From: Vitrella brassicaformis CCMP3155
Taxonomy: Eukaryota; Protista; Chromerida
Assembly: GCA_001179505.1 (NCBI GenBank)
Contig: CDMY01000466.1
Coordinates: 62,001 to 126,000 of the forward strand
DNA length: 64,000 bases
Reading direction: 5' to 3'
The position numbers and the translations under genes were made by a program. The notes under the pieces are model-generated. The model ran no database searches and was not told the origin of the DNA. It was given only the letters and a program-made list of their open reading frames with translations. Below are positions 46-9,400 of the stretch, in pieces; position 1 is the stretch's first letter; every line of letters begins with the position of its first letter.

Positions 46-2141
46 ATGCTTCGTGGCGAGTTCAGTGAGTCGAGTGAGCGGTCGGTGGTCCTGCGAGAGG
101 TCTCCCGTGACGTGGCAGCGGTGGTGCTTCGGACGCCGAATGACATTGTCAGAGATCTGACACAGGAGGTGAGCAGCAGAATGATTCACTGCTGTCACTC
201 ACGTCTGCGTGTGTGTGGCGCGGCGTGGTGATCGATCAGAACTTCATTGCCTGCTTAGAGGCCGTTGATTTCCTTCAGTACGAGAAGCCACGGAGCATCC
301 TCAAAGCCATCAAACCAAAGGTAGCCACGGAAATGGGAATCCATTCGTTCACCGACTCTCATCATCTGTTGTTCAGGTGGTCCGCAATAGGTGGCTGTCC
401 GACAATGACATCGCCAGTGCGCTGCTCAAGGCGTCCTTCCGGCGACCTCTCATCAGGTTCGTTCACTCGTAGGCATCTTGGTGTGTTGCCTGACCACGCG
501 TGTGTGGGTGTGGGTGTGGGTGTGTATTCAGGCGTTTCATCTCCGAGCATGACGAGGTGCTGTCGGCATGTGGGCCCTTCGTCCTGCAGAGTGCAGGAGA
601 AGTCGCGGCGGTGTGGGACAACGCACCACCATCCACATCCCAAGACGACGGCACGGACAACATTGAGGATGGTGACGGTGATGGGAAGCCCACTGCGGCC
701 AGCAGTGCACCACTCGAGTATGTCATGTCACTGCTGAATCGCCTGTTGCGTTCGTTGGAGGCTGGCACCTATGACGTCTCGCTGTCGAGCCTCAAGCGCT
801 TCGCCACTGACGCGACGCGGTCGGGAAGCTTCCCTGAGGCGGCTGCCGATATCTTCGAGTGCACCAAGTAAGGGGCAAGCAAGCCGCCTTGCATGCTGCA
901 TTCATGTGTGGAGTGGATGCATGTGTGTTATGTATGGCTGTGGACATTTGCAGGTTGTCTGAGGAGAAGGCCGTGGAGATCACGTCACCCGGGGAGGGCA
1001 AAGGCGACAAGACAGATGACGGCCGATACGTCGCCGTTCTGCACGGCAGCGAGAGAGAGTGTGACGCCAAGCTCGAGTTCGACATCCGCAGCGGGCCCTA
1101 CGATGAAGAAAGTAGCAGTGAGGACATGAAGTTGGCCGGCGTCAGAACATTCGACATCACTGCCGACTACTGCGGGCAGGCCAACGAGCGGTCAGTGATG
1201 ACTGTGAGATGACTGAGGTTGTCGTCGAGCTCCTGCTATTCTCTGTCTCGTGTGCAGGACGGTCTTCTGCTATTCGTTTCGTGCGGACATCTCCATCGAC
1301 ACCGACAAGGAGCCCATCAAGATCGAGAAGAAGGAGTTTGATTTCTCTCAAGGATTGGCAAACATGCCAGTGTTTGTCATCGGCCTCCTTTGGACACAGC
1401 CTATCACCAACGTGCTCGTCATCCCATTCAAGGACAGCGAGGCCTTTGAGGGCAAGGACACCACTGTGGCGTCTGTCAAGGCGTCTGTGACGATCCGCCA
1501 CTATCCGATGAGGTGCCTGGTGCTCCACTGCCTGCGCCTGATGATCCGCGAGGGCCAGTGGGCAGACATGCAAGGCGTCGGCGCCGCCATCACACGACAG
1601 GTGCGCAACGTGCAAACAACACATGGCGCCGTCCGGTCTTCATGTGTGTGGCTGTGTGTGTCTGCAGGTAGCTGAGCAAATGGCTGTGTATCTGGCCAGA
1701 ATGACGGCAGACGGCGTGTCCCCGCTGCGTGTGCTGACGTCATGGATGAGCGGCTGGGGCAGCGAGCAGCACTTGGACGAGTGGACCCGCAGTGAGGTGT
1801 CGTACGCCGCCCTGTCCACCGCCGTGATGGAGACCCACATCCGAGACCTGGCGCCCTTCATCCGAGTGTTCGGCCAGCTGATCGCCGACAAAGGCGGCCG
1901 GGACGATTCGGTGGACAAGATAGTTTTGAGGTTGCAGGACGAACCCGACACCCTGCGCACATTCATCGAGTCCATGTTTGATGATGGGGCATCGGGAGGG
2001 CTCAGCACAGCCTCTGGCGGGTCGAGGAAGAGAGGAAGGATCAGCATCGGTGTCGAGTGCACGGTTGGCCGCCAGGAGGGCGGGCACCAAGGCAGTCGGT
2101 TTAGAGCCATGAAAGCGTTGTTAGTCGTATTGATAGACTGA
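46..2141 (+). CDS. BTB/POZ-domain protein, multi-exon, 5' end probably outside the window
   Basis: The exon after ggcag at 46 reads MLRGEFSESSERSVVLREVSRDVAAVVLR, which fits the BTB consensus m..g.f.Es....v.l.dv. It is followed by NFIACLEAVDFLQY. Further GT-AG exons continue to the stop at 2141. Exon joins were only partly checked. Confidence 0.6.
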
Positions 2142-2378
2142 CTGATAGACGGACAGACATGCTACGTGTCAGCTACAATATTCGGTCCAGAGGCAGCAGA
2201 AGAGCAGGGCTTTACTACATTTGCAAACTACACACGTGAGCTTTGAATCACTTCAAGAAGAGAAAATCACTTCAAGAAAGAGAAATTGCCGGCGCTGTTG
2301 GCGCGCGCTTTACTTCGAGCAACTACTGCACACTGCACACGCGCTCGACAACAGCAAAGGAAAGGTAAAAGGGAAGTT

Positions 2379-3293
2379 CTATTCCTCCTTGTCATGCTGA
2401 TCGCAGTCCTCGTCCTCGCCAACAACACAATCGCTGCTATGCTTGAGACGGCGGCCACCGCCTGAATGATATGTCCGAAGACGAGCAAATGGAGACAGAC
2501 ACGCAATGAGCTCTCTGTGTTGGGGTTCGGCATTGCGGTGGTGTGTCCGACCCACCCCCACGGCGCAGCTCTCTCTCATCGTGGTCGTCACTGTCGAGGC
2601 GTCTGCCGCCCCGGCCACGGCGCAGTTCACGCTCTTCCTCCTCGGTCAGGCGGCGGCCACCTTGCAGACAAACAAGACACGTATACACGAGAAAGAAAGA
2701 CGTGCCGCAACGCACCTCCCCCACGACGAAGCTCGCGTTCGTCCTCGTTGCCGTCCAGACGACGGCCCCCTGCACCCAGGAAGCCACACACACGTCCTCA
2801 GTGTGTAAGGCCTTCTGGGTGTGTTGTTTTGCCTGCCCACCACCACCACGTCTCAGCTCACGGCCCTCCTCGCCCTCCTCCTCTTCTGTGAGTCTTCTGC
2901 CGCCGCCACCACGGCGAAGCTCCCGGACTCCGTCCTCATCAGACTCCTTTTCTTCGAGTCTTCTCCCACCGCCACCACGTCTGAGCTCACGGGCCTTCTC
3001 GTCCTCGTCATCCTCCTCTCCATCGAGTCTTCTGCCGCCGCCACCACGTCTCAGCTCACGGCCTTCGTCCTCGTCAGACGCGGCCCCTTCCTCCCCAGCG
3101 TGTTCTTGTTGAGCACGGAGTTCGTCACGCGTAGAGCCTTCTTCAGGCTGTGTCTGAAGATCAACAAATCCGTGCTCAAGGCCACTGGCGTTGAGGTATT
3201 AGTGTTGATGCCTACGTTGAGGCCACTGGCGTTGAGAGAGCTGGGGAAGGTAACCAAGGCAGGCACAGTGAGGAAGACAAGGCGAAGCTTCAT
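2379..3293 (-). CDS. Secreted repeat precursor (about 210 aa): signal peptide, then 7 x RELRRGGGGRRL separated by acidic spacers
   Basis: Five exons (3293-3216, 3153-2841, 2769-2716, 2660-2556, 2461-2379) with GT-AG introns whose phases all match give one open frame. It begins MKLRLVFLTVPALVTFPSSLNASGLN and ends KHSSDCVVGEDEDCDQHDKEE*. Confidence 0.85.
2445..3060 (-). repeat. Coding repeat-spacer array: seven 36-nt (spliced) units encoding RELRRG(G/R)GGRRL
   Basis: Units differ mainly at synonymous third codon positions. The spacers encode DGEEDDEDEKA, EEKESDEDGV, TEEEEGEEG, DGNEDE, TEEEE and DSDDHDE. Confidence 0.9.
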
Positions 3294-3453
3294 CGTGCGG
3301 TCGTTTCCCGAGGAAGAGGCCTCTGGGAAACCAAGATCACTTCTTTGGGGGCCCGCGGGGGGGCGCAGTTGCCGTCTCACCGTTTTTTCCGGTCAACTCA
3401 GTTGACCCTCACAGGCAGCTGGCAACGTATAGCGAGACGGACCTCCAGACAAA
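3294..3453. promoter_or_regulatory. Putative 160-bp bidirectional promoter containing a perfect inverted repeat GGTCAAC-tca-GTTGACC (3391-3407)
   Basis: Divergent ATGs lie at 3293 (-) and 3454 (+). The hairpin was read directly from the sequence; its function is inferred. Confidence 0.45.
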
Positions 3454-6400
3454 ATGAAGCGACAGCCGGAAGAACATCGTACTGATGTGAATGGTGATGG
3501 TACGGGAGAGACGCCTTTGGCAGATCTGCCTGACGAGTAAGCAAGGGGTCCTTCGAGTCACAGAGCAGTGCGCGTCCCACTCCATCCATGTATGATCTGT
3601 TTCCATGTCCTCCGTCAGTCTGTTGGTGTATCTGGAGCACTGTGTGGCACAGTTCGACGCCGATTTCAACAGAGTGGCTGACGAGTTCAAAGGTGAAGTG
3701 AAAGCTGTGGAGTGCATGCGTCTGATGACTGCTCTGTTGTCATGTAGCGCTGGTATCTGACGCTGGCCCAGGGGAAGGCGACGGCTCCTCTGCGTCTCAG
3801 TTCACAGCCGAGAACCTCAGGCGACGATGGCTGAAGCACACCAAGCAGCAGACGAACCAGCCTGCCAATGCCGCTGAAAGTGCCTCCTCGAGACCAGCCG
3901 ACACGGCTGAGGAGAAGGAACGTGATGAACAGAAGATGAATGGGGAAGGTGGCGCCACCGAGACGGAAGGAAAACCTTCAAATGTGTCCGACTTCAACAT
4001 CCTCCGAGACAGCCTGAGAGGTCGGCTTGCCCAGATCCAGGCAAATGCAGCAGCCAACCTGCCGTCGATGGTCGAGGGAGAAGGGACTGGCGGCGATGAG
4101 CAGCCGTCCTCGACGGATGCGCGAGGGGAAGCGGCAGATGAGACACACGAGGACGAGACAGAGAGAGAAGGCGCGGATGGGGACGCGGAGGACGATTCGC
4201 CTGTGGAAATCTACGATGCGACGAGGGCCAGAGTGACCGGCGGCATCCGCCTGCAAGACGCATCCCCACCATCCACTTCATCAGCCCGACCAGCGACCGA
4301 TGAGACGAATGGAGACGCCTCGGTGGTGGTGCAGATGGCCCTCACAGAGACGAATGCGGCACCCATTCCACATTCCCTCCCCTCTGCTATGGACAAGAAG
4401 AGCGACAAGGGTTTGATCACGTCTCCGCCGACAGACTCAACCTTCCTCCCTGAGACGAACGAGACACAGAGTGTCCAGCAGGACACCGACGAGGCCGCCT
4501 TCAGCCAGAAGACAAAAGAACTCTTTGGCACGGACAAAGTGAGGGAGCTGTTTCCCGACCTGCCAAGATCGTGGACTCACCCGATGGCCAGGGACATGGG
4601 TGCGGGACCTTCTGCCGCCGACGAGGAGTCCGCTGCCACGATCCCGAGTTTTGACGCTATTCTGTTGAGCCAGCATGTCAACCCTGATGACCCTGTGGAT
4701 GGGAACTTGGTGCAACTGCCGCCTGTAAGATGAGACATAAACAGAAGGGTATGCATATGGCGACATTCGACGTATGTCTCTGCCCACAGGGGTTGGAGGA
4801 TGTATACAGTGCACTACGGCAGGGACTTGCAGGCAGGAACTACGCTGCCGAGGCTCCCCCGGTGGACCGGCCCCACAGCCAAGCACCGAGGTCTGCCATA
4901 CCGCAGCGTTTCCAGCCGACCATCAAGCGAGTGAGAAGAGAACAGGAAACGGCCCCTGGTGCTGACGGTAGTGAAAGGAGCGAGGCGGTGTGTGATGGGG
5001 TCGAGCGGATTGGGTATGGGGAAGACGAAGGCCCCGATGGAGACGACGAGGACGATGTGGGCACGGAAATATTGGCAAAAGGTACAACTGTTTGTATTTA
5101 TGGCTTCTTCATTCCCGCTTCAGGTTGGTTGGCTGTCGCTTCGTGCTCGTATGAAGCAAAACAGCCAAGACCTACTGTCAAAGAACAACGACATCCAGGA
5201 ACCCACACGGCCGCTCCCACCTCTGGTCCGCACCGATCTATTTCCTCCCGCCCCTCCCGTCCCTTCCACCTTCCCCGAGCCGCCCACGCCCCCACCGTCA
5301 CACGCACCATCGGCCCCTCTGCCCCGCGTCCCATCCCCTGTAGCCATCATGCGCGAGCACCCGACTATGGACGACGAACTGCCCTCGGATGAGGCACCAT
5401 CGCCATCGGCCAGTGTCACTGCAAGTGCCTTCAGAGACGGCAGCACGGGGGCCGACAGCACGTCCCCCGGAGACGCTTCCGTCGGTGTGGCTCGGCTGAC
5501 TCCTCGGCTCTTGACTGAGATCGAGAGGGAGGAGTTCGCCAGGGAGACGGAGAGAAGACGAGACGAGTTGCGGGGGCGGCTGGCTCCAATTATGTTGCCG
5601 CGAAGCCCGGAAACAATCGAAAGGCTGGCTGCACTGACGACACCAGCGGCGACACCGAGTGGTACGGCAGCGGCAAGAGGCAGAGAGGCAATCGGCAGGC
5701 GCTGGATGGTGCAAATGGAGGAGCAGGAAAACACAGAGATGGCGGCATGGACATCAACCAATGAGATCACAAAGAGCAGAGAGGAGGATCAGCCATCGAG
5801 CACCGCCGGCCCGAGTGCTGCACGTGCTGAAGGGGAGGAGGCGGCGCCACCTGAGGTGACGGATGACCAAGCCAGGCAGGCGCAGAAGGAGCGGCTGCAG
5901 TCTCAAATATCAGCGTGGTTCGCTCAGCGAGACGACTTGTCTCTCTTCCACCCATCTGTCAGCTTCGCCCCATCACTGCCGTCGTTTCCGGAGACACACC
6001 TTGACGCCTTCAAGCAGCTTCCGACCACCACGACGTTGCCGCCATGTCTCGCCCGATGCACCATCGCCATCCTGCCGTGGGGCTGCTCGTCTCGTGTGCT
6101 GACCCCGCCATCTGATGTGCAAGTGCTGGTACTGGAGACGCTGTTCCAGCGGGGCCTGGTCACGTCAGTGAGCCAGCTGCCGTGGACGTGTGTGGCGTCG
6201 TCGGCCCTCATGAGGCACCAGATGGCGATAAGGGCGGCCGCGCATAGGTCGGCGGCGGTGCTGCTGTTGGTGCTCAAATGTCAGGACACCTCTTCGGTGC
6301 TAGACGTGGCCATGGAGGGGTCGGAGCTGTCGCTGAGGGACGCGCTGTGGCTGTTCTCTACCAGTGCGGCCCTGCTCAACGACGCCATACCCCTGCTGAT

Positions 6401-9400
6401 GGCACCTTTGTCGTTCTCACAGCACGGGTTTGCGTCGTGCAGTGTCGGCGGGTCCGACGCGCTTGGGACTGATATGCACGTGGAGAGCATCTGTGTGACG
6501 CTGCGCTTGCAACCGAGCTCAGCTCCGACTTTGCTGCCGTGGCTGTTCAAACACACCAGCCAAGAGAGCCTCCTGTGCATCGGGTCGGTGAGACACAAAC
6601 AAGGGCATTTAGCATGACTATTCATTCATCCGATGTGTACAATGCGGGGGCTTCAGGCTTCGTTTGGTATACTCGACGCCGTCAACCATCCAGTCGTCCC
6701 CAACCCTCTCGCTGAAGCGCTCGCAGACGCCTTACCTGCCGACACTGATCTTGGCCTTGAGAGGACCTTTCGCCCTCACCAAGTGGCACGCCATCCAGGG
6801 ACCGGCCGACCCCACACTGGCCAGACGCACTGACCCCTCGTCGCTCAACGCTTTGTATGGCGGCCAGGACCGGGGCAGTGCTGCTGCCACGAGCGTGCAG
6901 GCGCCACACCACGCCATGATGGAGGTCATCTGGGCATTCGGCGGGCGAATCGACCTGACAGACAGTAGGTGGGATGGCTGCACTGTGGGCGTGGGGGATC
7001 GGCTCCAGCAGCTGGTGTATGGGGCGGCCAACTGCAGACAGCTGCTGATGAAGAACAGTCCAGCTGTCTACCGTGTTGCCCTGAGCAACCAGCTGCTCCC
7101 GCAGTGTCTGCCGCAGCTCATTGGGGCTCTACAGTCCCGCTGTGGCGCCCTTCTGAGCATCAGCTCCCTCCCGTCCGTCTCCATCGCCTGTATTCCACCC
7201 CGCACATCGAGTTTCGTCTTCACGTCTGTGTCGGAGGGCGGGTGGGAGGCCCTCTCGTCGATCGAGGAGCACCTGTTGCGCCCACCAGTGCAGACCCAAG
7301 GATGGAGGGACCTCACGAAGGCGGGCGCCCACGCAGTGTCACAGAGACGTGATTCGAAGGAGAAGGACAAAGGGAAGGAATGTGGGGCTCTGCCTCTGTC
7401 CTTTCATCCCTTGGCTGGTGATGTGTCGGTCGACCCTCTGGGGCTGCTCATCCGGGGCGGTGACCTCAGGGGCCGGGGGATGGTGGCCATGGGGTCGGGT
7501 GGCGCAGGAGACGAAGACACGCCAGAAATAGCAGTATTCGGTGCGGAAAGAAGCGATCCCTTTCAGATCGTTGCAATGGGGACATGAGTGTGTGTCTTGC
7601 AGGTGCGTGTGGTTCGCTCGACGAGGCCCCAGGTCTTGCTGCGTTCCTTGCTGACGTCCTCTGCGATGGCAGCATCGCATCCCGCATCCGCGTGCCCGAG
7701 GACGGCAGGGATGACGTCCAATCATTCGACGACATACCACTCTTCGGTGAGACACACTCACACAAAGAGCTCTTTTGCAAGGTTCGTACAAAGAGGCTCG
7801 CTCTGTTGCTTGATGATCAGGTGGCGCCCTGCAAGTGATAGCCTTCACCCTCATCGACCTCAAGTACCACAACCAAATCAGCAACCAGGATGCCGCAGCG
7901 AAGGAGACATCGGCAGCTGCATCCCCACACGACGATCTCTCCTCTCTCTCCTGGGGCGGCGCCGGCAGCCTCTGCAGAGACAATGCCACAATGACGACTG
8001 AGGGGCGAGAGGCGAGGGACAAGGGCATCAAAGCCCTCATGGCGCCCCATCTCTGTGACCTCACCCAGCTGCAGCGAGGCGGGAGCCACCCCTGCCCCCT
8101 TGAGGACGCCCTGCGGCTGCGTGAGGAAGATCTCAAGGACGGGGTGATGTTCCTTTGTGCGGTGCGGGGCGAGCGGGCGATCGAGTCGATGATCGGCCCG
8201 CTGAACCGCACTGCACGTCGACATATATCCCAGCGAGCCAGAGCTCCCCAGCCCCCGGTCAGCCGGCAGCTGAGCGGGTCTCTTTCCAACGGATCAGGGC
8301 CGGTTGTGAGACCCGTTGAGGCCGACGATATCGTTTTCCTCACGCCAGATCAGAAGGTTAGGCGAGAGAGCGGGCACAAAACAGCTCGTCTGTATGGCCT
8401 TTGGCATGATGTATAGGCTGCCCGTGCCATCTGGCGTCTGTTCTTCGGCCGGCACGAGAGGTCAGTGCCGGTGGTGGGTGGCGGGTCGTTCATCGCCCAC
8501 CCCGCCCGCCATCGGCTGTCCGAAGAGCGATACCACCCATCGCCCCCACTCACACACGTGGGGGAGGCTCTCCTGTTTTCTTCTGCCCTGCGGCCTGTCA
8601 TGACATCAACGGTGGCAGTGCTGCTCGCCGGTGGGCTGTCGGCTGCCTCTGGTGTGTCGAATAGCCCGCCTTGTCTAACATCTGCCCTCGAGATGGTGGC
8701 CCATGCGGCGCCGACACACAACATCGAGATCGCTGGAGTGTACACCACACGTAGGCAGCCAGCAGGGGACACATGATGGTCTACGGTGGATGGCCTTTCT
8801 CTGTGCGTGTGCCATTCAGCGCTGCCGTTGACGGATTTGGAGGCTGCCATTTTGTGCAGACAGGAGTTGGATGACAACCGGGCCCACCTGACCCCCTCAG
8901 TGCGGGACAGCGTCACGGCGTTCTTTCAATCGCTGGCGATGTCCGCGCACGATGGCCATTTCATCGTATGGGTCACACTCAAAGGCACCAATGGTAACAC
9001 ACCACACAACGAGAGAGGCACGACATCTCGTCTTGTCTCGTCTGTTCACCGTGTGCGTCAGTTGTGAAGCGGTGGGCCCGTCTGTGCGGCTCTTCGTACG
9101 CCGCCCTCAATACACAGCTGTCCCGACCTGCACTCAAGAACCAGATCGGCCACATCCCACTCTCAACCACACACACACCCACAGCCACAGCCGCAGACAC
9201 CTCGGCCTTTTCTCTGCCCGCCCTGCTGTGTGCGACATCCTACCAAGCAGCCCAGTTTCTGCTGAATCAGCTGCTGCGTCGGGGGGGCAAGCGACGTGCG
9301 AGGGAGAGGGCGGCCGGAAGTGGGCTGGAGGGGTATGATGAGGGTCAGGCCGGGGCCAGTGATGCTGCCGAGGCCAAGACGTGTGTAATTGTGAGCGTGA

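Follow-up and report, generated by a model that had tools for sequence, protein, structure and literature searches.

A weakly expressed orphan gene of the chromerid alga Vitrella brassicaformis with the layout of a multi-copy, possibly RRL-processed, peptide precursor

The gene considered here lies on the minus strand of contig CDMY01000466.1 of Vitrella brassicaformis CCMP3155, within a stretch of 64 kb that was analysed as a whole (the window, to which all positions refer), and encodes 210 residues in which a segment resembling a signal peptide and an acidic leader are followed by seven almost invariant basic 12-mers, here called cassettes, separated by acidic spacers. This orphan gene of a chromerid alga is genuine and its expression is weak; what is new in it is an orphan sequence carrying a known layout, that of multi-copy precursors. 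The explanation that we favor, with a probability of roughly 0.45 and by analogy with better known systems, is that the product would be a precursor processed at RRL sites to give a short Arg/Gly peptide. A first-pass annotation of this DNA had already read the layout as that of multi-copy peptide precursors, and the known precursor plans discussed below (Sil1p, Ib-AMP, KEP) agree with it.

When the minus strand is translated in three frames between 3420 and 2250, six RELRR and six G-RRL pieces are found scattered over all three of them, so that the cassettes come into a single reading frame only after four short segments have been cut out (Table 1). The gene rebuilt in this way runs from 3293 to 2379 in five exons, with a coding sequence of 633 nt that gives the 210 residues and a TAG stop, and its four introns all have GT..AG ends. 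The first of them moves the reading into the frame of the cassettes, and each of the three phase-1 introns that follow would interrupt a run of glycines, in such a way that splicing regenerates an exact 12-mer from two half-cassettes; exon 3, whose frame is not that of exon 2, makes sense only when spliced. The first-pass annotation had described a gene of four introns and 210 residues hidden from any view of single open reading frames (ORFs), with three phase-1 introns within glycine codons, and the model rebuilt from the sequence matches it in every particular, the predicted introns 2–4 being found at those positions.

Four sequencing runs were aligned to positions 1400–4600 of the window, and one of them, X5, behaves as RNA, with two GT..AG introns of the neighboring plus-strand gene (3537–3618, of 82 nt, and 3691–3745, of 55 nt) spliced out. 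In this run a contig joins 3216 to 3153 and omits 62 nt, whose CT..AC ends on the plus strand are GT..AG on the minus strand, and this junction confirms intron 1, the coding strand, and the shift of frame toward the cassettes; moreover, as the RNA contig extends up to 3333 and no ATG is present upstream of 3293, the protein does begin with the signal-like segment. A second contig covers 2840–3047; it agrees with the genome as far as 2840, precisely where the donor of intron 2 is predicted, and then come three letters that do not match. For introns 2–4 the reasoning is a different one: they have canonical ends, sizes like those confirmed in the neighbor (55 and 82 nt), and a uniform phase, and their removal restores the cassettes exactly from three frames, from which we infer that they are spliced. 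Thus, the RNA check that had been proposed for the splicing upheld intron 1, which is spliced in an X5 contig, and RNA contigs do not cover introns 2–4. The depth of X5 over the cassette gene is about 3.6, vs 35–100 for the neighbors.

A further search of runs over 2379–2769 found the locus in DNA-like runs only. Marine sediment metagenome runs contain near-identical DNA of this same segment (share of words 0.78, 0.10, and 0.07), which indicates that sediment, and not only the cultured isolates, contains this alga or a strain very close to it.

Two particulars of the introns may be recorded at this point. The sequence CTCAACGCCAGTGGCCT is present twice, at the end of exon 1 and within intron 1 (3183–3236, minus strand), and it is because of this duplication that a repeat of period 14 is called there; the RNA contig in this place uses the canonical GT..AG junction 3216/3153, not a deletion from repeat to repeat. 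Further on, intron 2, exon 3, and intron 3 together (2661–2840, minus strand) form 180 nt free of stops in the frame of exon 2, and a transcript that kept both introns would read in frame into cassettes 6–7, with a hydrophobic, Cys-rich insert of 60 residues in place of halves of cassettes 4 and 5, which may reflect an alternative isoform or, the DNA being GC-rich, mere chance.

The N-terminal segment, in which a hydrophobic core of 12 residues (Kyte-Doolittle peak/mean of 2.4 over a 12-residue window) lies between MKLR and PSSLNA/SG, looks like a signal peptide, and the protein would accordingly be secreted. It is followed by the acidic leader of about 35 residues, by the cassettes with their spacers, and by an acidic tail of 21 residues with two Cys. 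The cassettes start at residues 58, 81, 103, 124, 142, 159, and 178, and read RELRRGGGGRRL in six of the seven and RELRRGRGGRRL in the other; they consist only of R, E, L, and G, without Cys, Ser, Thr, Tyr, or Lys and without a hydrophobic face, and their core, LRR-GGGG-RRL, is a peptide palindrome. Each carries a net charge of +4 or +5, and each of the six spacers (11, 10, 9, 6, 5, and 7 residues, rich in Asp/Glu and with few Ser) one of −4 to −7, and the charge blocks of the mature chain (net −18, isoelectric point, pI, 4.9) are strongly segregated; in all, the protein contains 5 Lys and 9 Ser. The layout that had been announced for this product, with a signal peptide, an acidic leader, and seven near-invariant 12-mers separated by acidic spacers of 5–11 residues, is thus recovered in it, the signal peptide by the look of its sequence. 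Around residues 35–40 of the leader (3120–3105, minus strand) there is also RDELRA, which resembles the half-cassette RELRR in degenerate form and may be the leftover of an eighth unit.

Neither relatives nor a fold were found for this protein, the queries having been made with the product of exon 2 (104 residues, 2842–3153, minus strand, with 3.7 cassettes). A phmmer search of 1.84 billion cluster representatives gave no related match, its only match (E 6e-8) being a bacterial repeat protein, OmpA-like at its C-terminal end, that was dismissed as unrelated after inspection of the sequence; a word-indexed library, which covers proteins of 57–182 residues, gave 1925 candidates and none significant; no Pfam domain was found, and the best score in the ESM Atlas, 0.64 to viral and bacterial repeat fragments, is noise. 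The degenerate DNA pattern of the full cassette found no genuine relative in the metagenome contigs of the Joint Genome Institute (JGI), where four single matches on bacterial contigs of 68–73% GC, with one copy each, no acidic spacers, and Arg/Ala-rich junk frames, are attributable to chance. However, these libraries did not return even the product of the gene itself, and therefore the missing relatives say little about intron-rich eukaryotes. AlphaFold2 gives the exon-2 product a mean predicted local distance difference test (pLDDT) of 57 and a predicted template modelling score (pTM) of 0.17, mostly as coil, and this product is predicted to be intrinsically disordered; the idea of a helix-hinge-helix was abandoned, as only two weak helices of low confidence appear.

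It is in the codons of the cassettes that the conservation becomes evident. The mean identity among the seven cassettes is 75% in nucleotides and 99% in protein, and the variable sites are confined to codon positions 1 (Arg, CGN/AGR) and 3. Between pairs of codons there are 134 synonymous vs 6 non-synonymous differences, all six due to the single Gly-to-Arg change, which is that of cassette 6; and among the 42 nucleotide differences from the consensus one alters an amino acid, whereas the random placement of 42 differences (200,000 trials) produces a mean of 25 changes and a minimum of 14. The spacers have an identity of about 33% and vary in length, and they are always acidic, with a charge that roughly matches that of the cassette. 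As DNA, the second exon is still seen as a tandem array (Tandem Repeats Finder, 2843–3079, period 66, 3.6 copies, 76% matches), and a degenerate pattern for the cassette's first 20 nt has 6 matches in the window, where 0.02 are expected, every one of them within the gene. The antisense frame (SLLPPPPRLSS / RRRPPPPRRSS) is less conserved than the sense frame. To judge from these substitutions, it is the cassette peptide, and not its DNA, that is under very strong purifying selection, and the spacers are constrained in charge only; the earlier observation that the copies differ at synonymous positions is in this way given numbers. Such exact conservation of residues within a disordered protein argues that a protease or a receptor recognizes the specific sequence, and not for bulk composition, and together with the drifting, charge-matched spacers and the signal peptide it points to such recognition in the secretory pathway.

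What could recognize the cassette is suggested by its RRL. All seven cassettes present an RRLxx site of the Toxoplasma TEXEL type (residues 67, 90, 112, 133, 151, 168, and 187), and in three of them (RRLEE and twice RRLTE, the first at residue 90) the site also fits the Plasmodium PEXEL pentamer RxLx[EQD], outside of which fall RRLDG (twice), RRLDS, and RRLKH. ASP5 needs R-R-L at P3–P1, tolerates variable P1′ and P2′ residues, and works at N- or C-terminal positions (PMC4764566), and it left a REL site (RELLD) uncut in a published assay (PMC4764566); it is on account of this enzymology that RRL is favored here as the cut site. The first-pass annotation had called RRLEE and RRLTE exact PEXELs and RRL a TEXEL, and as matches of sequence both hold, at three of the seven sites and at all seven, respectively. 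Its two other labels do not: RELR as an RxLR effector motif is a coincidence of four letters with no effector domain behind it (no Pfam domain, predicted disorder), and the comparison with peptides made by the ribosome and modified after translation (RiPPs) lacks both their hallmark, as residues open to modification, such as Cys, Ser, Thr, or Tyr, are missing from the cassette, and a candidate modifying enzyme adjoining the gene, as no Pfam domain was found in the seven large ORFs, checked as raw ORFs, of the window's first 9 kb. Nor did a scan of the whole window for other RRL-dense reading frames find anything comparable. The further suggestions of that annotation, a pheromone, signal, or wall role for a released peptide and a hint at how export-motif processing arose, would be speculative.

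If we accept this reasoning, the course of events would be as follows. The product would enter the secretory pathway by means of its N-terminal signal peptide, as a charge-neutralized polyprotein in which seven cationic 12-mers (net +4) alternate with acidic spacers (net −4 to −7), and would be cut in the endoplasmic reticulum (ER) or the Golgi at the seven RRL sites. The protease would be one specific for RXL/RRL, such as is inferred to act on the biosilica precursors of diatoms and has been shown in the case of the apicomplexan ASP5/plasmepsin V; dibasic cleavage or trimming by a carboxypeptidase would perhaps come afterwards. The output would consist of a short Arg/Gly peptide in seven copies, with the core LRR-GGGG-RRL, for which the acidic spacers would have been neutralizing pro-pieces. 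Carried out in silico, a cut after RRL yields seven near-neutral peptides (net −3 to +1), each ending in a cassette, and cuts after both REL and RRL yield RRGGGGRRL six times and RRGRGGRRL once, along with acidic peptides of 8–14 residues.

This plan has precedents in very different organisms. As far as its sequence tells, the gene operates in the manner of polyprotein precursors of the RXL and dibasic kinds, and is a member of none of them by descent or by chemical hallmarks. The closest overall plan, by analogy, is that of Sil1p of the diatom Cylindrotheca fusiformis, a precedent that the first-pass annotation did not contain, in which a signal peptide and acidic residues 20–107 are followed by seven basic repeats ending in RRIL/RRNL, an end that the mature peptides no longer have (PMC4557024). 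The RXL motif has been put forward as one at which frustulins, cingulins, and silacidins would generally be processed, and the highly repetitive silacidin precursor of Thalassiosira, with RXL at the ends of its repeats, yields Asp/Glu-rich peptides (PMC4557024). The cassette gene has in common with the silaffin and silacidin precursors a signal or signal-like N-terminus, an acidic N-terminal part, seven basic units ending in RRxL or RRL, and charged, disordered products. However, it has no sequence homology with them (libraries, Pfam), its cassette does not offer the Lys or Ser that in silaffins are modified with polyamines or phosphate, its spacers do not have the Ser-rich, phosphorylatable character of silacidins, and its acidic stretches lie between the units and not solely ahead of them, as in Sil1p. 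V. brassicaformis is not known to make silica.

The second point of comparison is given by the relatives of the alga, as it is a close free-living relative of the apicomplexans (PMC4764566, PMC4501334). With the TEXEL/PEXEL substrates the gene shares the entry into the ER by a signal peptide, predicted here, and the sites described above (7/7 RRLxx and 3/7 RxLx[EQD]); but the known substrates have one site, rarely two, beside a functional domain, in contrast to seven in a repeat without domains, and the alga has no host cell into which to export. Likewise, the RxLR effectors of oomycetes have a single RxLR(-dEER) a short way behind the signal peptide, followed by a C-terminal effector domain (e.g., WY), whereas RELR occurs here seven times and is followed by none.

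Among the defense peptides, in the Ib-AMP precursor of Impatiens acidic propeptides come between the basic peptides (PMC10136942), and, as in the insect apidaecin type, there is a signal peptide, there are several Arg-rich copies, and the charge of the spacers roughly offsets that of the peptide. Nevertheless, the Ib-AMPs are 20-mers with two disulfides and spacers of 16–35 residues, in contrast to a 12-mer without Cys or a hydrophobic face and spacers of 5–11, and no homology exists with either type, the ESM Atlas score to apidaecin clusters (0.42) being at the level of noise. As for the fungal Kex2-processed repeat proteins (KEPs), these are recognized in silico as secreted proteins that lack a transmembrane segment and give at least four fragments with a repeated motif after KR/RR cleavage (PMC6339444), a rule that the cassette gene formally passes with 15 fragments, and with them and yeast alpha-factor it shares secreted, near-identical repeats and dibasic sites. 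But the host is not a fungus, the two RR pairs of each unit lie inside it and not between units, and no STE13-type XA/XP signature follows them.

Several points weigh against the peptide precursor. Firstly, RNA contigs are absent from introns 2–4 and exons 3–5 (X5 has none over 2256–2790), and neither the protein libraries nor the metagenome DNA scan provided a relative in which the cassette would have been kept across species. Secondly, cleavage is predicted from motifs, and the protease is proposed by analogy; a search of the literature found no statement of a clade-D aspartyl protease member in chromerids. Thirdly, a peptide of 9–12 Arg/Gly residues with a Gly4 center is unlike any known signal or antimicrobial peptide. 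Lastly, the introns place the boundary of the module in the middle of Gly4, which gives the unit GG-RRL-acidic-RELRR-GG, and a structural repeat of the beads-on-a-string type fits this equally well.

This last point leads to the main rival, a serious one that we nevertheless hold to be doubtful, according to which the protein would be secreted as a block polyampholyte and would function intact, with Gly4 hinges joining RRL-acidic-RELRR units, either as wall or matrix material, as an adhesive or coacervate former, or as a multivalent binder of anionic polymers by means of its seven Arg clamps. The predicted disorder, the segregated charge blocks with their net −18 and pI of 4.9, and the palindromic LRR-GGGG-RRL clamp all suit such a molecule, as does the fact that exon 3 amounts to exactly one GG-RRL-spacer-RELRR-GG unit and exon 4 to two, which suggests that the module lies between the glycines; and cleavage is, after all, an inference. 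However, composition cannot explain why 12 of 12 residues have remained fixed under saturated synonymous change while the spacers drift, nor why every unit should contain a textbook RRL site with acidic residues behind it.

It is also conceivable, although unlikely, that the protein is processed and that the acidic spacers, as in silacidins, are the products, with the cassette as a disposable module for cleavage and trimming. The silacidin precursor does yield Asp/Glu-rich peptides with RXL at the ends of the repeats and the silaffin RRIL/RRNL ends are discarded (PMC4557024), and the in-silico cuts after REL and RRL do release acidic 8–14-mers. But an invariant 12-mer with a Gly4 center far exceeds the needs of a protease site, the spacers do not possess the Ser-rich phosphorylation character of silacidins, and ASP5 left a REL site uncut in vitro (PMC4764566).

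Very unlikely, in our estimation, is a cut of the kexin/furin type after each RR followed by carboxypeptidase trimming, which would produce tetraglycine or possibly, by the classical X-Gly-Arg-Arg rule of neuropeptides, Gly-Gly-Gly-amide. Gly-basic-basic is an amidation signal, and fourteen RR pairs bracket Gly4, so that seven of the 15 fragments obtained in silico by cutting after RR are hexamers (GGGGRR six times and GRGGRR once). This would leave the fixed Glu and Leu unexplained; in addition, a literature search for an amidating enzyme with this genus found nothing, and a triglycine amide is too poor in information for a specific signal.

Finally, it is scarcely credible that this is not a functional coding gene as modelled (being instead an antisense plus-strand Pro/Ser ORF at 2543..3112, a decaying repeat, or a transcript ending after exon 2), for although an ORF of 189 residues crosses the region and the RNA contigs, at their low depth relative to the neighbors, lie on exons 1–2 only, the orientation of intron 1 sets the transcript on the minus strand, the antisense frame is the less conserved of the two, half-cassettes of three frames rejoin exactly by way of GT..AG phase-1 introns, and the synonymous-only pattern rules out decay. 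The plus-strand ORF, with its PPPPRLSS repeats, was rejected as a real gene: it is the mirror of the Arg/Gly cassette in GC-rich DNA and spans exons and introns alike.

Table 1. Parts of the cassette gene, with positions in the 64-kb window.
Feature	Position	Strand	Remarks
5′ untranslated region (minimum extent)	3294..3333	-	RNA contig of run X5 extends to 3333; no upstream ATG
Exon 1	3216..3293	-	start codon 3293-3291; signal-peptide-like segment MKLR, hydrophobic core LVFLTVPALVTF, PSSLNA/SG
Intron 1	3154..3215	-	62 nt, GT..AG, phase 0; joint 3153/3216 in X5 RNA contig
Exon 2	2841..3153	-	acidic leader, cassettes 1-3, first 22 nt of cassette 4; X5 contigs cover 2840-3153
Cassettes in exon 2	1: 3060-3025; 2: 2991-2956; 3: 2925-2890; start of 4: 2862-2841	-	from translation
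Intron 2 (predicted)	2770..2840	-	71 nt, GTGGGC..TGCAG, phase 1, in Gly 3 of cassette 4
Exon 3	2716..2769	-	one complete unit of 54 nt, with the end of cassette 4 (2769-2756), the spacer DGNEDE, and the start of cassette 5 (2737-2716)
Intron 3 (predicted)	2661..2715	-	55 nt, GTGCGT..GCAAG, phase 1, in Gly 3 of cassette 5
Exon 4	2556..2660	-	105 nt: end of cassette 5 (2660-2647), cassette 6 (2631-2596), start of cassette 7 (2574-2556)
Intron 4 (predicted)	2462..2555	-	94 nt, GTGGGT..TTCAG, phase 1, in Gly 2 of cassette 7
Exon 5	2379..2461	-	end of cassette 7 (2461-2445), acidic tail of 21 residues with two Cys (C-x7-C), stop TAG 2381-2379

With respect to its surroundings, the cassette gene stands head to head with the plus-strand neighbor already mentioned (3382–4600), whose transcript starts at about 3382, with its ATG at 3454 and a contig depth of about 35, and as the 5′ ends of the two transcripts are some 50 bp apart, a bidirectional promoter is probably common to both genes. 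The large ORFs of this neighbor (3936–4733, 4730–5392, and 4959–6617) have no Pfam domain. At the other end, about 100–130 nt past the stop, there is a direct tandem repeat of 19–20 nt (2246–2285, two copies, 95% matches, unit AATCACTTCAAGAAAGAGAA), which is likely to lie in the 3′ untranslated region or in a convergent intergenic region with a plus-strand gene ending at about 2141–2191.

The gene offers a clean case of a short motif that selection has kept perfect to the residue within an orphan protein that is disordered, and also a case of the growth of a repeat by way of symmetric phase-1 exons; and if its product were unprocessed, it would remain an unusual, charge-patterned, secreted repeat protein. 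A broader proposal, which we put forward as speculative and rather improbable, is that free-living chromerids have a housekeeping pathway, genome-wide in its reach, in which proproteins are matured at RRL/RxL by a Golgi/ER aspartyl protease of the ASP5/plasmepsin V type, that this gene encodes one of its substrates, and that the invariant LRR-GGGG-RRL is a new secreted peptide for signaling or defense. Repeats fenced by perfect RRL sites in a free-living relative would be simple natural substrates with a bearing on what the PEXEL/TEXEL-cleaving proteases did before parasitism. If this were true, the PEXEL/TEXEL cleavage of the apicomplexans would descend from an ancestral processing of peptide precursors, with a logic in common with the RXL of diatoms, and the RXL processing of diatom wall proteins, which is enzymatically unexplained, could be tied to a candidate class of enzyme.

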